The notes under the pieces are model-generated. The model saw nothing but the letters and a program-made list of their open reading frames with translations, searched no databases and was not told the origin of the DNA. Source: Vitrella brassicaformis CCMP3155 (lineage: Eukaryota > Protista > Chromerida). From it: a DNA stretch of 64,000 nucleotides. A program made the position numbers and the translations under genes. This document shows, one piece after another, positions 33,135-40,291 of the stretch. How positions within the stretch are numbered: position 1 is the stretch's first letter; each line of letters begins with the position of its first letter. The DNA is taken from NCBI GenBank assembly GCA_001179505.1, contig CDMY01000336.1, forward strand, positions 186,001 to 250,000, given 5' to 3'.

Positions 33135-34859
33135 TCAGCTGATCTGCAGTGCCTCGAACTGCCCCCGCCTGTTGATGTACCCCAGCTGCTGCCATTGGAA
33201 CTGGCAGTCGCTATCGCCGAGGTGGGTGTTGAAGCCCTTGACCACCCCCTCCACGCCGTGCTGGGCCGCCTCGTGCAGGCGGGCCTTGTGCACCACCTCA
33301 CGCACACCCAGCCGTCGATGCCGCCCGCCCCCCTGCTGCCCCCCCTTGACGGCGAAGCACTGCAGGGGCGGCACCGTCACTTTGGTCCGCTTCGCCCCTC
33401 CGTCCTGCTGCACGTGCCGGCTCCCCCCGACCACCTCCCGGTTGCTGGTCGTCCGTGTGGCCGCCTGCGTCACGAAATGCGCCACGGCCGCGCTCACACG
33501 GCGCTTCAGCAGCGACTCGCCCATCAGGTACCCATCGATGGTCGCCATGGCGGTGTGTGGCTCGTGCAGGAAGGAGCCGATCTTCCAGCCGACGGCCTCT
33601 GCCTCCTGTGGGCCGAATGAGAGGCTGGAGGGCGATGGGTGGGTGGGGTGGCCGTCGTGGTCGGGCGCCAGGGGCAGCAGACGGGCGAGCAGCATCGAGT
33701 GGTCGCGCTGAGGTCGCAGGGCGGCGTTGATGGCCGCCATGTGGTCGGCGTACTCGGGCAGCACCAGCTGCCGCTCACGGCGGTCCCGCTCTGTGGCCGT
33801 GGGCAGCCGGGCGATGTCCGCCCCCGCCTGCAGCAGCACCCGGATGGTGGGCTTGAGATAGAGAATCTCGTTGGTGGCTCGGTCCCTGGATGCCTCCTCC
33901 GCAGTGTCGTCCTGCTCCAGCTGAGTCTTCTGATCGAGCGCCTCAGCAGCAAAAGCGAGGGGTGTGTAGTTGGGGTGGTTGGGTTTCCCCACGTTGATCT
34001 CAGCAGCCGTGAGGCGACGGCACAGAGAGACAGCCACACGGTGCGACCCCCACATTGCCGCGCAGTGCAGTGGCGTGTCGCCACGGTTGTCCACTGCCGT
34101 GATGTCCGCCCCCTTGGCCACCAACAGGTCGAGGTAGCGGTCGATGAAGGACTGGGACCACACAGGACGGGAGGAGGCCACCCAATGCACCGGATTGCCG
34201 CCATGCCGTCCATCAGTCTCGGTTGCGAGGGTGGGGTCGCGATCGATGAGCTGCTGGTAGAAGGACAGCAGGGTGGCCTCGTTATCCCTGGTGGGCCGGT
34301 CCGTCTCCAACGTGTCTGGCAGGTCCATCACCTCTCGCCCATGCAGCTGCAGCCCAATCTCTGCCATGAGCAGACGGAAGGCCGTCTCGTTGCAGGATGC
34401 GATGGCCACGCGGACGGGCCTGGCACCCGGGCAGTCCTCCCCGTCCTCGTCGGTCGGGATGGCGTTTATGTCCGCACCTCCATCGATGAGTGCCTTCATG
34501 ATGGCCTCCTGCTGGTCGGGTGACGACCACCGCGGCAGAGCGATGGGACAGTCATCATCGCCGTCTGCTGCGAAGATGGACGGGATGCGGTTGTCGGTGA
34601 GGTTGTCGATGCACAGGGACAGCAGCGGATAGGGTACGAAATCTCCCGTGGTGCCCTCGACCCCCAGCTGGGGCTGCGCATTGGGGCTGGCTCCCTGCTG
34701 TCGAATGAGCTCCGTCACCTGCTGGACGTGGGTGAAGCCGCGCGAGATGATGCCCTCTGACAGCTGTCTGGTCTCATCGCGGGTGTCATCAGGGAAGCCC
34801 GTGTCGAGCCGGCTGCGGCCAACCCAGCCACTCGGCAGAGCTGCGCCCGCTGCGGCCAT
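33135..34859 (-). CDS. Intronless lineage-specific ankyrin-repeat family protein, copy 2 (intact, 574 aa)
   Basis: Single uninterrupted ORF with ankyrin motifs (ALIDGGADINA, AKGADITAVDNRGDTPLHCAAMWG, VLLQAGADIA) and a C-terminal domain nearly identical to copy 1 (TTSNREVVGG...KGFNTHLGDSDCQFQWQ). Confidence 0.9.
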   Translation of the reverse strand: MAAAGAALPSGWVGRSRLDTGFPDDTRDETRQLSEGIISRGFTHVQQVTELIRQQGASPNAQPQLGVEGTTGDFVPYPLLSLCIDNLTDNRIPSIFAADGDDDCPIALPRWSSPDQQEAIMKALIDGGADINAIPTDEDGEDCPGARPVRVAIASCNETAFRLLMAEIGLQLHGREVMDLPDTLETDRPTRDNEATLLSFYQQLIDRDPTLATETDGRHGGNPVHWVASSRPVWSQSFIDRYLDLLVAKGADITAVDNRGDTPLHCAAMWGSHRVAVSLCRRLTAAEINVGKPNHPNYTPLAFAAEALDQKTQLEQDDTAEEASRDRATNEILYLKPTIRVLLQAGADIARLPTATERDRRERQLVLPEYADHMAAINAALRPQRDHSMLLARLLPLAPDHDGHPTHPSPSSLSFGPQEAEAVGWKIGSFLHEPHTAMATIDGYLMGESLLKRRVSAAVAHFVTQAATRTTSNREVVGGSRHVQQDGGAKRTKVTVPPLQCFAVKGGQQGGGRHRRLGVREVVHKARLHEAAQHGVEGVVKGFNTHLGDSDCQFQWQQLGYINRRGQFEALQIS

Positions 34860-35300
34860 GACCTAGTGCCTCCTACAACTGCTGGCACCACAAACATGGA
34901 CACGTCTGCACACAGAGCACGCCCAGTGTCGGTGTCTGAGTTGCGCTCCTCGGTGCATGTGCGTTGCCTTGCCCGCTGCCCACTCACCGCATTGCTCTGC
35001 TGCTGATGCTCACTCTTCGCTGCAGCTGAGCCACCATGACAACGGCGCTCTCACGCAGGAAGGAAATCGTCTGCCATCGATGCAACACAGTGGATGCCGC
35101 GACATGAGGTGAAGCATTGTATACACTGTAGGTGATCTCCTGTGCTGCTGCTCACCAGGCACGAAACAGATCTGGAGCATCATCTGCTTTGCTGGGAGGA
35201 GGGGTGCCGTTCGAATCCTGCGAGCTAAGCCTGCAGCTGCATCCCCTGAAAGCAGCGGAATGTAAGACGACCACCAACTAGACCAGGCGACTCATCAAAG

Positions 35301-37312
35301 ATGCATTCTGTGGACGAAGGCGACAGCCAGCTGTCTGAGGACCTAAGGGCCTCTGACAGCCGGGCACACATTACCGTCCCGGTGGCATTCGAGCGGTCGA
35401 GGAGAGTCTTCCACCAGAGGGCCACTTTCCAAGCCTTCGCTGCTGGTATTTCATCGCTGGAGGAGATAGCCCCGCTGCTGACGAGCCTCCGGGACGACGA
35501 GCGATTGGCCGATGTGCGGGGGTACTTTCTCGCCTTCCGGGTGAGGGCAAAGCTGTTGCACGATGAGGGAAACAACGCTCGAGACACCCCAGGTATTGCT
35601 CACGGGATGAAATGTACACTGAACAGTGACACAATGCTTTATTGACTTTTCCTTGTGCAGAGTGTGACGCGCTGGGGCCTGAGGGTGGGGAGGAGACAGA
35701 GGTGCTAGAGGGGCAAGAGGATGTCAGCGATGACGATGAGTACTGTGTCAGCGAGCATCTCCTCGACCTCCTTCGCTCGGAATCCCTCGAGGGCATCTTG
35801 CTCGTCGTGGCTCTCACAGACTGGGGCGGCATCGGCAGACTCGGCAACGAAGCGCGTATCATGGCAGTCCAGACGAGCAGGCTGCTGTTACAGGACCTTG
35901 GGCTTGTTGCGCCTCCCCGAGAGCTTCAGCCGCGTCGGCAAGAAGGAGCGATTGTGCCATGGACGGTTCCTTCAGTGTCAAGCGAATTTAAGATGGAACT
36001 GCCCAACAAAGAGTCAATGAGAATGCCGTCTCGTCTCGCGTCTGCCCGGCCGGCGCCTATTAGGCACTTCCCTTTCGACGACATAGAGCGGCCCGCCGAG
36101 GTGCCGCCTGCTAGGGGCAGGGGGGCACAGATGGTCGGACCAAACCATTTTCTCGCCAGCGCCCCCCTGCACGCGCAGCAGGGGCGGAGGACGGCCACGA
36201 TCAACGAGGAGGAGCTTCTCCATCAGCAGCTATTCAGCCGTTTCACCCCGTCTGACGCGCAGGTGTGCCAGAGGGTGTGGGAGGTGAACGAGAAGATCCT
36301 CACCAACCTGTCTCGCGCGGATATTCTCGAGCTGAGGGCCTCTCAGCGGCCTCACCGGTCTGTGCAGAAGGTCCTCTTTGCCGTCGGCATCCTGCAGGGC
36401 GCCTGGCCGCTACAGTGCCCCCCCAACTGGTCTCTCTGTCGGACCACAGTGCTCGCATCGCCCACCCTCCGGATGGAGCTTCTCTTGTTCAACGTGAGCA
36501 AGACCAAGACCGCCCGCGTCGTCAAGGCCCACCGACTGACCAAAGATTTGACCCTCGAGGAAGTGCGACGGATCAGTCCTCCTGTCGGCGTGCTGCTCGA
36601 GTGGGTGCGGGCGATCGTCACGGCACACGCGGGGCTTACGGGCAGCAACAGGAGTGAAAGCCGACGGGAGACGACGGCAGACAAGCGGCAGTTCCTGCAG
36701 CCCAAGCACGCCGTTCTGCGCAGCGAGGGGGCGCGAATGCTTAAAGTGGCTCCCAAGACCCTCGAGCTCAATGTGGAGGAGCCGCCATCGCCCCGCTCGC
36801 CTCCCCGCCTCCCCGTACCGCCTGCGAGCGATGCTGACAGCGTCTCTGTGACAGCGTCCTCCCTCCCATCCCCTATGAGGTCCACAGGGAGCGACAGGGT
36901 ACCGCAGACACAGAGAGGCCGACAGTTCCCTTCGCGAGACAGAAGGCCATCCATCGTGCCTCCTATCGCGTCGTTCCAAGGCCGCGACCCAAGACGGCCT
37001 TTCCCTAGTGTGGCGGCGTCGATTCTCGCTGTCGACCCGCCATACGTGTACAGGCAAACGGGCGGTGCTCTGTACAGGCAAACGGGCGGTGCTCTGAAAG
37101 ACGCAGAAGACGCGGGGGACAAAGAGGGCGGTGACAGGTCGCCCTCGGGTGGGGAGGTGGTTGGCGAGGAGAAGGATGATACCGCCACGACAAGGATGCT
37201 GCGGTCGATCGTGCAGCATTTTAGTGAACGGCGGCTGCATCTCGAGGCCACCATGGAGGGGATCAAAAACGATATGCGCGAGATGACATCGGAAGATAGA
37301 CATGCCGACTGA
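35301..37312 (+). CDS. IMPACT/UPF0029(YigZ)-like domain fused to a dynein heavy-chain stalk/microtubule-binding-like domain
   Basis: Exon 1: RATFQAFAAGISSLEEIAPLLTSL...GYFLAFRV. Exon 2: EDVSDDDEYCVSEHLLDLLRSESLEGILLVVALTDWGGIGRLG (UPF0029 pattern). Later: LTNLSRADILELRASQRPHRSVQKVLFAVGILQG...W...DLTLEEVRRISPPVGVLLEWVRAI (dynein MT stalk pattern). One intron at ~35593-35660. Confidence 0.7.
37047..37094 (+). repeat. Perfect 24-bp tandem duplication in coding sequence (YRQTGGAL x2)
   Basis: tgtacaggcaaacgggcggtgctc occurs twice in tandem, in frame. Confidence 0.95.
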
Positions 37313-37617
37313 AAGACGCCTAGATGTCGTTCGGTGCAGCAGCATGTATGTGTCATGAGACAGTGCCGTGAGGGGGGGAGGAGGGGGGTGAATGTGTGCT
37401 GGCTTGCATTGCTTTGTAGCAGATTTGTGGCCAATTGGTGGACGGCAAATCATTGCTTACGATTGTCCATGTACACATCAACAAGTGTGTTGTCTCTCGA
37501 CCCGACCGAGTTGAATGAATGCCTCCACGCATCAACCAGCACCCAAATCAGACCATGGCTCTCATGACCGCCAACAAGAGACACGTCAACACCCATTGCA
37601 ACTACCCGTCATCCCTA

Positions 37618-40291
37618 TCACCTCCCCTGCACGGCCATGCCCATCCGGAGGGCCTCGATCTTCTGGTTCAGCTGTTTCTGCATCTCCACGAACCTCGACA
37701 AATCAGGGTCCTCACCCATTTCCCCCGTAGGCGCCGAGCTTCCCTGCACAACCACGTCTGAGTCGCTGGTGCCCCTTCTCAGCCCCACATTATTGTTGAC
37801 ACTCATGCGCAACCGCGGCCGCACGACATCTACCGGGGCCTCACTCGCGGGCGGCACGGACGATGCAGTGGTGGATGTGCGGGCTGCCGGAACCGACGTG
37901 GGAATATCGGCCTTGCATTCCACCGGCCGCTCCACACTCGCCTGGCCTTGCTCCAGCTCGTCGGCACGAGACACCGCCACTGCCTTGGCTCCCCCGTCAG
38001 CGCCACCCCAGCTCTCGTAAAGCGGTACTTGCTCGAAGGATACAGAGAGGTCAAATCCCACGTCATGTGCAGCCTTTGGTTGAGGCGCCGACAACAGTCT
38101 GGGCGGCATGTCCTGCCACTGGCGGGCCGGTGGCGGAGGCGGTGGTGGTGGTGGTGGGGGTGGCGAGGGAGAAGGAGAGGGCCATGGGGAGGGCGAGGGG
38201 CTCCTTTCTTGCTGGCAGGATGACCGCAGCTGCACCAGGTGGTTCTTCAACGCTGCATTAAACGATACAAAGAGGAATAGGTGTCTGTCATGAGGAAAGC
38301 ACGGTCTCCCATGTGTGGTCTGGTATGTTCCCGCCACTCACCTTTGTTTGATGCGCAATAACGACGGAGGACGTGTTGCCTACAGATCGACCCCACGGCA
38401 AGCCAGTCACATGATAGCACTGAGAGCACGCGTCTTCTCGCCTACGTGTTTCGCTCCTCACGCATAAGCCGTGTCGTGAGAGACTCAATCGTGGCACCAA
38501 TCAGTTCACGCTGGCAGGAACAGAAAGAAACGCCAAATACGCTCGATGGCTGCAAAAGAAATGCAGCCTTCGCCTTGACTGCCTCCCTCACCTGCCGATA
38601 GATGTGCTGCAGAAGGCTGGGCGCGCCGACGTGGAGGCCATCTCCCACCCCCTGCAGCACGCAGTGGCCACACGGATGACACATCGAGACACCCATCGAT
38701 GGCTGCCTGTCGTCTGATGGTGCGTGCATACGTCAGCAGGATTGCCAGCCGTGTGCTCAATCAAATCCATCAACACATCCAGCTGCAGCGAACTGACCGA
38801 CACACACACACACACACACACACGAGGAAAGCAGCACTCTTCATTCTGCCGTCGCATCTCGTTCGTGTCTGCTCACAGCGAGTCGAGATCTACGAGCATA
38901 CTGGGCTGCGGCACACCGATCTCAACCGCCTCTTCCCCGCGCCCGTCACACTCCACCGACCCCCTCAAGTCACGTTCTCCCGTCAGCCGCAGGAAGTGTC
39001 TCCTCCTCTCGTGATAGATCTTCTGCTCCTCCTCAGTCAGCCGCAGGTGGTGGCTGGTGGCCGGAGATGAGAGGAACGACGCACCGCGCCGGGCAGGGAT
39101 AAACGACGACGACGCGCGAGACTCGACGTCTGAGCGATCGATGGTATGTGGGGGATGGGGTTGCTGGATGTCGGAGCGATAAGTGGAGGTGGGGGGATGT
39201 TGGGGCTGGAACGGTCGGCGCTTGGCTGCTTGTTGCGGCCTGAACGCATGACAACAAACATCCCAACGGACTCTGGGGCCACTCGCCGCACCCCACTGAC
39301 CGTACCGTCTCTGTCTGAAGTTGTTCCACCATCTTTTAGAGTAGTAGGTGGACCCTCCCCGCCTCTCCACAGCCCTCCCGTCCTTCTCACCCCCCCTCTT
39401 GAAGTGAGGGTCCCACGCAGGCGTCGCTGCCCCCTCAACTGAATCGCCGGCGTCAACCCCGTTCTTAGTTGACGTATTGTGACCGTTGTCAGCCCATCTC
39501 GACCGCTCCAGTGGTGCGTGTGCCGCCGACATGTCCATGTGTGGCACAGGTGGGGGAGACGGGTGATCGGACGGTGGTGAGCGATCGGCTGGCGGCGGCA
39601 GGGCTTCTGGGGGGGAGTGGCTGTGGATAGATGGGGGAGGGACGGGACGAGACACAGAGGCAGCTGCAGCGCTGAATGATTAATCACAAAAAGAACACAC
39701 CGCGTTTCATGTCTCACGTCATAGCTGATGGATGGTGTGCACCTACTTGCGATTCTGATGCTGCTGTGAAGGCTGTGAGACCGTCAAGAAAGCCCCAGGT
39801 GGGTAGAGGTTTGGTGCCGATGGCGTCGGCAGCGCTTCAGTGTTCTTGCCGCCCCTCACCCTCACCACACGTCTCTCGTCCTTGCCAGCAGGACTCATAT
39901 GCAGTGGCGATGCCACCCCAGCGCCGCCCCTCTGCCGCCTCCACACATTCTCCTGCGGCACTTTGTCGTCCTGTCTGCCCCAGGCCCTCCTCCGACACGC
40001 CACAGTGGGGTCAGCCGACGACGGCCTCACCAGATTGCTGGCCGGTGATGTTTGAGCTGAGACGCCCACACATGTGCTGGGAGGCCGGAGGGCGTCGAGA
40101 GAAGCCACCGATGCCGTCATTTCGGCAGGCGCATTCATCGCTGATTCAGTCGCAGGCTGCCCGGGGTGGACGAGCCGTCGGGCTGAGACGGGGGAGGGGC
40201 TGTCCTGGTCGGTGACATCGATGCACAGGCGGAGAGCTGAGGCGCCTCGGCTCATTTGCAGTGTCAGCAAGCAGCTACGGGCAAGCAGCAA
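37618..40291 (-). CDS. Multi-exon hypothetical protein, Pro/Ser-rich
   Basis: Long minus-strand ORFs 39743..40291, 38873..39655 and 37618..38337 are linked by GT-AG introns and small exons (LQLDVLMDLIEHTAGNPAD; LLQHIYRQVREAVKAKAAFLL). No recognisable family. Confidence 0.55.

Follow-up and report, generated by a model that had tools for sequence, protein, structure and literature searches.

The window analysed in this study is a stretch of 64,000 nt from Vitrella brassicaformis CCMP3155 (contig CDMY01000336.1 of assembly GCA_001179505.1, positions 186,001 to 250,000 of the forward strand), and we focused on one of its genes, located at 35301-37312 on the + strand. The gene has two exons, and its product of 647 aa, deduced from the open reading frame (ORF) and the splice sites, was identified as the Vitrella member of a conserved non-motor family, in which an IMPACT/YigZ-type domain is joined to a head of the type found in the microtubule-binding domain (MTBD) of dynein. 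This architecture and the homology of the two domains are close to certain. On balance, the protein is probably a static tether on microtubules, and binding of microtubules by its head is a prediction that analogy with dynein slightly favours. The parts of the gene that carry this finding are the following:

35301-35592, + strand: exon 1, with the ATG at 35301 (292 nt, 97 codons plus the first base of the junction codon)
35593-35660, + strand: intron, GT..AG, 68 nt, phase 1
35661-37312, + strand: exon 2, a single open frame of 1649 coding nt with the TGA stop at 37310-37312
about 35403-35592, + strand: first half of the IMPACT-like domain, in exon 1 (28.3 bits against the family N-domain profile)
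35711-35902, + strand: second half of the IMPACT/UPF0029-like domain, with a degenerate DDGE-type loop and a W-G-G-I-G-R-L-G loop (33.5 bits)
36242-36685, + strand: dynein-type MTBD with short CC1 and CC2 stalk stubs, as given by the AlphaFold2 (AF2) model, Foldseek, VIA and the A1 profile
about 36314-36640, + strand: H1-H6 core of the head, within the dynein-type MTBD

The gene model was examined by comparing four public sequencing runs (X1, X2, X3 and X6) over positions 34600-38599. X1 and X6 are runs of two different studies, and contigs of both contain the joint 35589>35658 (cut +3), which skips precisely the 68-nt intron; the junction codon spanning the two exons is GAG. In X2 and X3, which are evidently DNA, one long contig includes the intron. 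In X1 and X6 there is no coverage of the divergent intergenic stretch at about 35136-35269, so these two runs fit RNA (the RNA status of X1 is a guess, and for X6 none is given). The contigs of X6 tile 35658-37308 and no further joint lies inside 35661-37312, and so 36640 is the end of the second domain and not of the gene. The first-pass annotation, which was made from the letters of the window alone, had given the extent as 35301-36640; its start and the end of the second domain hold, and the gene itself runs on to 37312. Its claim of a single spliced gene with both parts on one transcript was borne out, as the intron splits the IMPACT-like domain and the remainder is one open exon, and the two segments lie where it had placed them (about 35403-35902, and the core at 36314-36640). 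The gene is single-copy in Vitrella, whose genome is GC-rich: a search of the genome with the family profile found no paralogues, all matches apart from the gene itself being dynein heavy-chain loci. In a contig of X1, an extra C was observed in a run of seven C at 36417-36424, inside the head-coding region, which would shift the frame; at its depth of 7 of 12.5, a homopolymer error is likelier than a genuine variant.

To place the protein among known sequences, an exhaustive HMMER search of 1.84 billion representatives was performed with exon 2 as query (relatives are cited here by our P numbers). At E ≤ 1e-3 the search returned 34 relatives, of which nine reach E ≤ 1e-10. All 34 are 100-641 aa long, and not one is a dynein heavy chain. 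P0001 is the closest (E 3e-24), and the identity of the Vitrella head to those of the relatives is 24-38%. The core common to the relatives corresponds to exon-2 residues 204-325, that is, to 36272-36637, and many of them also have an N-terminal domain that aligns to exon 1 and the head of exon 2. Pfam analysis of ten relatives placed UPF0029 above the cut-off in five (P0001, P0003, P0009, P0012 and P0014), and precomputed Pfam assignments list both UPF0029 and MT for P0003 and P0041. A word-index protein search with exon 2 gave nothing, a kind of search in which a blank result says little; with the family alignment as query, it returned only P0003, its near-twin P0041 and P0042. Alignments A1-A5 revealed one domain order throughout the family, to which the Vitrella protein conforms: the IMPACT-like domain, a linker with F.F..LP and YGPNHF motifs, the MTBD-like head and a C-terminal helix.

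The family spans alveolates (Vitrella and dinoflagellates) and stramenopiles (oomycetes). Its named members include the Oxyrrhis marina protein UniRef100_A0A7S4GPQ5, GEMP01 transcripts identified through PMC6642578 as those of Hematodinium, and EukProt and MMETSP transcripts, and the only name that it has in the databases is 'Impact N-terminal domain-containing protein'. An ESM Atlas cluster of 58 members, most commonly from Oomycota, is the best match of P0003 in features and of the Vitrella head model in shape. That model matches the cluster representative over residues 5-209; PF01205 is present in 33% and PF12777 in 14% of the cluster. Of the groups that had been named for a search of the same architecture, dinoflagellates have it (Oxyrrhis marina, Hematodinium), and it extends to oomycetes. 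The first-pass annotation knew of no described protein with this pairing. For the searchable literature this stands, since a limited, keyword-based search, whose result is provisional, found no published description or functional study of the fusion family. The pairing is not unique to Vitrella, however: it is already in public databases as a conserved family (Atlas, UniRef, EukProt, MMETSP). Compared with the Atlas/UniRef family, the Vitrella protein has the same domain order, linker motifs and C-terminal helix, but it is longer (647 aa, compared with about 400-520 aa) and, unlike the rest of the family, has extra sequence inserted close to the N-terminus as well as a long insert rich in Pro, Ser and Arg. 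The gene of one relative, P0016, lies in a gene-dense contig of 49.9 kb (SRR32481641, L010), beside kinesin, DnaJ and weak KLRAQ genes.

The sequence of the head points to dynein. When the segment 36182-36661 was compared with all PDB sequences by phmmer, 14 of the 15 matches were dynein heavy chains (best E 0.0088), all aligned at the MTBD and several over the whole head. The closest non-self match of the head in the Vitrella genome is also a dynein head locus, with a pairwise identity of 24% over 118 residues (E 1.37, which alone is not significant). Much clearer values were obtained with the head profile A1, built from the Vitrella protein and 24 IMPACT-linked relatives: it matched 84 PDB sequences with a best E of 3.7e-17, and all 60 matches listed of these 84 are dynein-type heavy chains aligned at the MTBD. 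P0003 scores 36.1 bits to MT (PF12777, gathering score 24 bits) over profile positions 94-211, which are the head. Alignment of the family head with five dynein heads of the Vitrella genome revealed signature positions common to both (D/E-h-x-E-L-[KR], P, V..V..AV...G, W..[AC][KR], L..[FL]D and S.AA..L..W). Furthermore, basic residues are kept at the dynein positions in H1 (L-R..R.P in the family, h-K..KPP in dynein), in H3 (W..C+ and W..AK) and before H6 (RR.S and.K.S), and the net charge of the Vitrella head is +9 over 110 residues. No Pfam match to AAA+ or dynein-motor families was found anywhere in the 647-aa product, in agreement with the claim that the motor is missing.

The predicted fold leads to the same assignment. 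The segment 36053-36742 was modelled by AF2 with an alignment of 41 non-dynein relatives, and the model has a mean predicted local distance difference test (pLDDT) of 83, with residues 71-190 above 94. Its helices are at residues 66-83, 88-96, 102-115, 126-133, 139-144, 153-163 and 168-174, followed by a long one at 176-211, and the linker motifs (model residues 1-20) adjoin the domain with a pLDDT of about 76. In the Foldseek comparison with PDB, the top 48 matches, and 48 of the 50 listed, are dynein MTBDs or stalks; isolated dynein heads gave TM scores of 0.70-0.74 by target and a root-mean-square deviation (rmsd) of 2.7-2.9 Å, and the microtubule-bound dynein head 6rzb_C superposes with a TM score of 0.70 and an rmsd of 2.9 Å. 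The exhaustive VIA search, in which unrelated chains begin at about Z 6, matched the model to 6l4p_B with Z 16.4, superposing 125 residues at an rmsd of 2.3 Å, and to 5ayh_A, a structure of the full stalk, with Z 16.0. Because the latter match covers model residues 65-210, the flanking helices can be assigned as the last turns of CC1 and CC2. The stalk stubs are short (about 18 residues of CC1 and 25-35 of CC2), and there is no long stalk. The full-length model of P0003 shows two confident domains joined by disordered linkers, and its head matches mouse dynein 3err_B with Z 17.1 and an rmsd of 2.4 Å. The segment that had been read by eye as a dynein stalk head was therefore recognised both by the A1 profile and by VIA, and the structural check proposed at that stage, modelling followed by comparison with the dynein MTBD, returned the expected fold.

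For the N-terminal domain, the family profile was rebuilt with the rows of the Vitrella protein left out. In this profile, positions 15-62 were matched by exon 1 (28.3 bits) and positions 64-131 by the head of exon 2 (33.5 bits), so that one match continues into the other at the splice site. The IMPACT-like domain is therefore interrupted by the intron, and it is encoded only once the message has been spliced. The domain begins within about 35 residues of the N-terminus. Exon 1 by itself has a faint match to the ancient domain of Yih1 (6bqi, E 1.3), and the family N-domain profile (alignment A2) matches residues 142-249 of the same structure with E 2.6e-12. The fold of the N-domain is available from one relative, P0003, whose model gave Z 15.8 to TT1547 (2cve_A) and 15.3 to YigZ (1vi7_A), with an rmsd of about 2 Å, and 10.0 to Yih1 (6bqi).

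Alignment A2 showed that the conserved loops have diverged. The canonical A-T-H motif is absent across the whole family, where DG.DEG.GE and RW.D.G replace the usual DDGE..GTAG and RYFGG..LG. The loops are most degenerate in the Vitrella member: DDDEYCVSE stands where the family has DG.DEG.GE, so that both glycines (the G-x-G of the DDGE loop) are lost, QAF stands where the family has QAH, and the second loop is LTDWGGIGRLG. The early description of a degenerate UPF0029 domain, with DDDE for DDGE and the His missing, was accurate in these respects. No Pfam match to an RWD domain was found in the Vitrella protein or in the ten relatives. A canonical, bacterial-looking YigZ-type UPF0029 gene of 204 aa (PF01205 E 3.4e-32) was detected elsewhere in the genome at C396:11662-11976 (L005 1222-1836, - strand), with intact DDGEPSGTAG and RYYGGIKLG, and contig C578 has two partial UPF0029 matches.

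Outside the two domains, three further regions were distinguished:

36059-36151, + strand: conserved linker motifs, from F-x-F (HFPF) through V-G-P-N-H-F, in the full-length alignment A4
36686-37186, + strand: Pro/Ser/Arg-rich region, probably disordered (P 15%, S 12%, R 11%)
37187-37285, + strand: conserved C-terminal amphipathic helix with one invariant Arg, in alignment A5

HFPF is at 36059-36076 and VGPNHF ends at 36151; the family consensus of this linker in A4 is F.F..LP....KYGPNHF. The Pro/Ser/Arg-rich region matches no Pfam family, and the equivalent region of P0003 has a pLDDT below 50. In the family architecture, a basic, disordered stretch rich in Pro and Ser stands at this place, between the head and the C-terminal helix. 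The C-terminus is closely matched between the Vitrella protein (HFSERRLHLEA) and P0004 (HFAARRLHLEA), P0003 is modelled as helical at 480-516, and the helix is possibly an element for dimerisation or partner binding. The sole Pfam trace in the Vitrella protein is MIP-T3_C, near the C-terminus (E 0.13), which we took as coiled-coil-like composition. Within the coding region, a perfect 24-nt tandem duplication at 37049-37096 encodes YRQTGGAL twice.

According to the mechanism that we propose, the MTBD-like head would dock on the outer surface of the microtubule, in the tubulin intradimer groove, as the head of dynein does. Having no motor to shift the register of the coiled coil, it would act as a static tether, with an affinity presumably fixed by the packing of the stubs; the C-terminal helix may pair two copies, and the IMPACT-like domain, whose conserved loops are partly lost in Vitrella, would form the cargo or effector end. 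In dynein, the face made of H2, H3, H4 and H6 is primed for binding in any motor state, and affinity depends on whether H1, which is controlled by the stalk, clashes with beta-tubulin (bioRxiv 590786). The static tether reading follows from the fact that a stub-only head has no stalk control. In Vitrella the tubulin genes are split by introns, giving open frames of 120-335 aa.

Several points weigh against this reading. The Vitrella protein gave no match at E ≤ 10 to PF12777 or, with the exons searched apart, to PF01205 (gathering score 27 bits) in Pfam scans, so the HMMER check that had been proposed failed for this protein and succeeded for its relatives, five of which have UPF0029 and P0003 also MT. 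Similarly, six-frame scans of the genome did not recover the locus, the one with PF01205 recovering separate canonical UPF0029 genes and the one with PF12777 about a dozen dynein heavy-chain loci. The net charge of the head ranges from -2 to +10 across the family. The IMPACT-like end may be structural only, because its loops are degenerate in Vitrella. Additionally, a stub-only head could be locked in a low-affinity state, as the position of H1 is set by the register of the stalk.

The dynein-like head might have been re-used as a protein-protein interaction module without microtubule contact, holding for example a partner like the leucine-rich repeat (LRR) light chains or the linker of the same protein. 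In 6l4p_B, the best structural match, an outer-arm dynein head is complexed with the light chain LC1, so that protein partners can be carried by this fold; the model places the conserved linker motifs beside the domain at the moderate confidence given above, and the heads of several family members are near neutral. However, the family shares with dynein heads its conserved basic positions in H1, in H3 and ahead of H6, the listed PDB matches of the domain profile are dynein-type heavy chains at the MTBD without exception (60 of 60), and the non-dynein fold matches include a microtubule-bound Toxoplasma domain, 9ya2_L. We consider such a module unlikely. A static head could also compete with dynein or with other users of the same tubulin groove, and so serve as a roadblock or regulate transport or axonemal dyneins locally. 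This is a special case of the tether, consistent with a fold and conserved basic positions that are the same as in dynein heads, but it cannot be told from a plain tether with present data, and we regard it as rather improbable.

The first-pass annotation had suggested that an IMPACT-type GCN1/GCN2 regulator, or an actin-linked module, is tethered in this way to flagellar or cortical microtubules. The N-domain is indeed a true homologue of the ancient domain of Yih1/IMPACT, and fragments of Yih1 bind actin, ribosomes and Cdc28 (PMC4503747). However, binding of GCN1 by Yih1/IMPACT depends on the RWD domain, in which substitutions in helix H3 reduce binding, and the parts of Yih1 that are enough to bind actin and ribosomes overlap the flexible linker (PMC4503747); no RWD match was found in the Vitrella protein or in the ten relatives, the canonical A-T-H is missing from the family, in Vitrella the G-x-G of the DDGE loop is gone as well, and the genome retains canonical UPF0029 genes apart from this one. 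As the RWD domain is absent and the partners and function of the ancient domain are described as not known (PMC4503747), the GCN1/GCN2 link is weak, and we abandoned it as highly improbable. Finally, chance similarity or a faulty gene model, joining two unrelated pieces or a non-coding stretch, would agree with the failure of the Vitrella protein alone to match either Pfam model, and is refuted, with a negligible chance of being right, by the splice seen in two runs, the 34 relatives with E down to 3e-24, the N-domain halves contiguous across the intron, the high-confidence model and the conserved C-terminal helix.

The protein was also compared with the characterised systems closest to its two domains. 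The head has the same six helices and first turns of CC1 and CC2 as the MTBD of dynein heavy chains (mouse DYNC1H1, 3ERR and 6RZB; Chlamydomonas outer-arm gamma, 6L4P; DNAH1, 8I3J), with the PP of dynein H1/H2 replaced by +P. Dynein heavy chains have an AAA+ ring, a linker and a long antiparallel stalk, none of which is present in the Vitrella protein and its family, and they exceed 4000 aa, compared with 100-641 aa in the family; the register of their stalk is driven by ATP, which is impossible for the family head. Likewise, the N-domain, as modelled in P0003, has the beta-alpha-beta-beta-alpha-beta fold of IMPACT/Yih1/YigZ (6BQI, 1VI7, 2CVE), but the family lacks both the RWD domain of eukaryotic IMPACT and the DUF1949-type C-domain of YigZ.

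Dynein-type heads were also detected in other non-motor proteins. P0020, a protein of 462 aa, contains three heads (154.8 bits to PF12777), P0030 contains two, P0033 is also a tandem array of two or three, P0019 has a ubiquitin-like domain before its head, and P0034 is an annelid protein (Ridgeia piscesae, 283 aa) with one head undetected by Pfam. Further non-motor proteins with such heads are P0021, P0024, P0029 and P0031. Among PDB chains of axonemes and the conoid, 9fqr_Xl, 9e5c_2e, 9ya2_L and 7jrj_I match the head structurally with Z 6-11, and judging from their modelled lengths (162-1096 residues) none of the four is a dynein heavy chain. For 9fqr_Xl (bovine sperm axoneme, Z 11.2) and 9e5c_2e (T. 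brucei flagellum, Z 8.5), helical arrangement alone is a possible cause of the match. A sequence search with P0034 returned dyneins only and did not name 9fqr_Xl or 9e5c_2e, and we treat both chains as leads.

The globular domain of Toxoplasma gondii ICMAP2 (9YA2 chain L) is a compact helical domain of similar shape to the head. The assignment of 9ya2_L to ICMAP2 fits its residue numbers, 1207-1457, which among the proteins in the ICMAP2 paper agree with this one only. The chain gave Z 7.8 with the Vitrella model and 9.3 with P0003, values in a range where a similar arrangement of helices can by itself produce a match. ICMAP2 is a protein of 1678 aa that lacks an IMPACT domain, and no sequence link to the family has been shown. 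The ICMAP2 paper, which makes no comparison with dynein, describes the domain as bound outside intraconoidal microtubule 1, between protofilaments 3 and 4. We treat the likeness as a lead and not as a claim of homology.

Taken further, these cases might indicate that the dynein head is a mobile module taken up by several non-motor families, that the IMPACT-MTBD proteins are an unrecognised class of static microtubule-associated proteins (MAPs), and that the fusion offers, for the first time, a positional hint as to what the IMPACT ancient domain acts on; the ICMAP2 domain and some axonemal chains may belong to the same set. We put this broader proposal forward tentatively, as somewhat more doubtful than the predicted binding itself. 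If the static tether reading is true, the dynein head would be an independent microtubule-docking module outside motors, and chromerids, dinoflagellates and oomycetes, groups that include relatives of apicomplexan parasites and zoosporic plant pathogens, would have a new type of MAP. Moreover, the recurrent fusion with a microtubule binder would be a clue to where the IMPACT ancient domain acts. The function of this domain was described as elusive in 2015 (PMC4503747), and no later account of it was found in the literature. With about 130 residues, the head is easily expressed and tested.

In the neighbourhood of the gene, a divergent gene lies upstream at 33135-35071 on the - strand, with an ORF of 574 aa and ankyrin repeats (Ank_4 E 4e-11). 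Contigs of X6 skip 34906-34987 (CT..AC, which is GT..AG on the - strand), revealing an intron at the 5' end of the ankyrin gene, and the transcripts of the two genes are about 230 nt apart. At 34781-34831, at the 5' end of the ankyrin gene, seven base differences in 51 nt were found in contigs of all four runs, at about half depth in the DNA runs; two alleles, or a second copy that is almost identical, would look like this. Downstream, contigs break at 38141-38154 in all three DNA-containing runs, with loose ends on both sides and a slightly raised depth. Because the site is in a proline-repeat coding part of the ORF 37618-38337 on the - strand, a short repeat is likely there.

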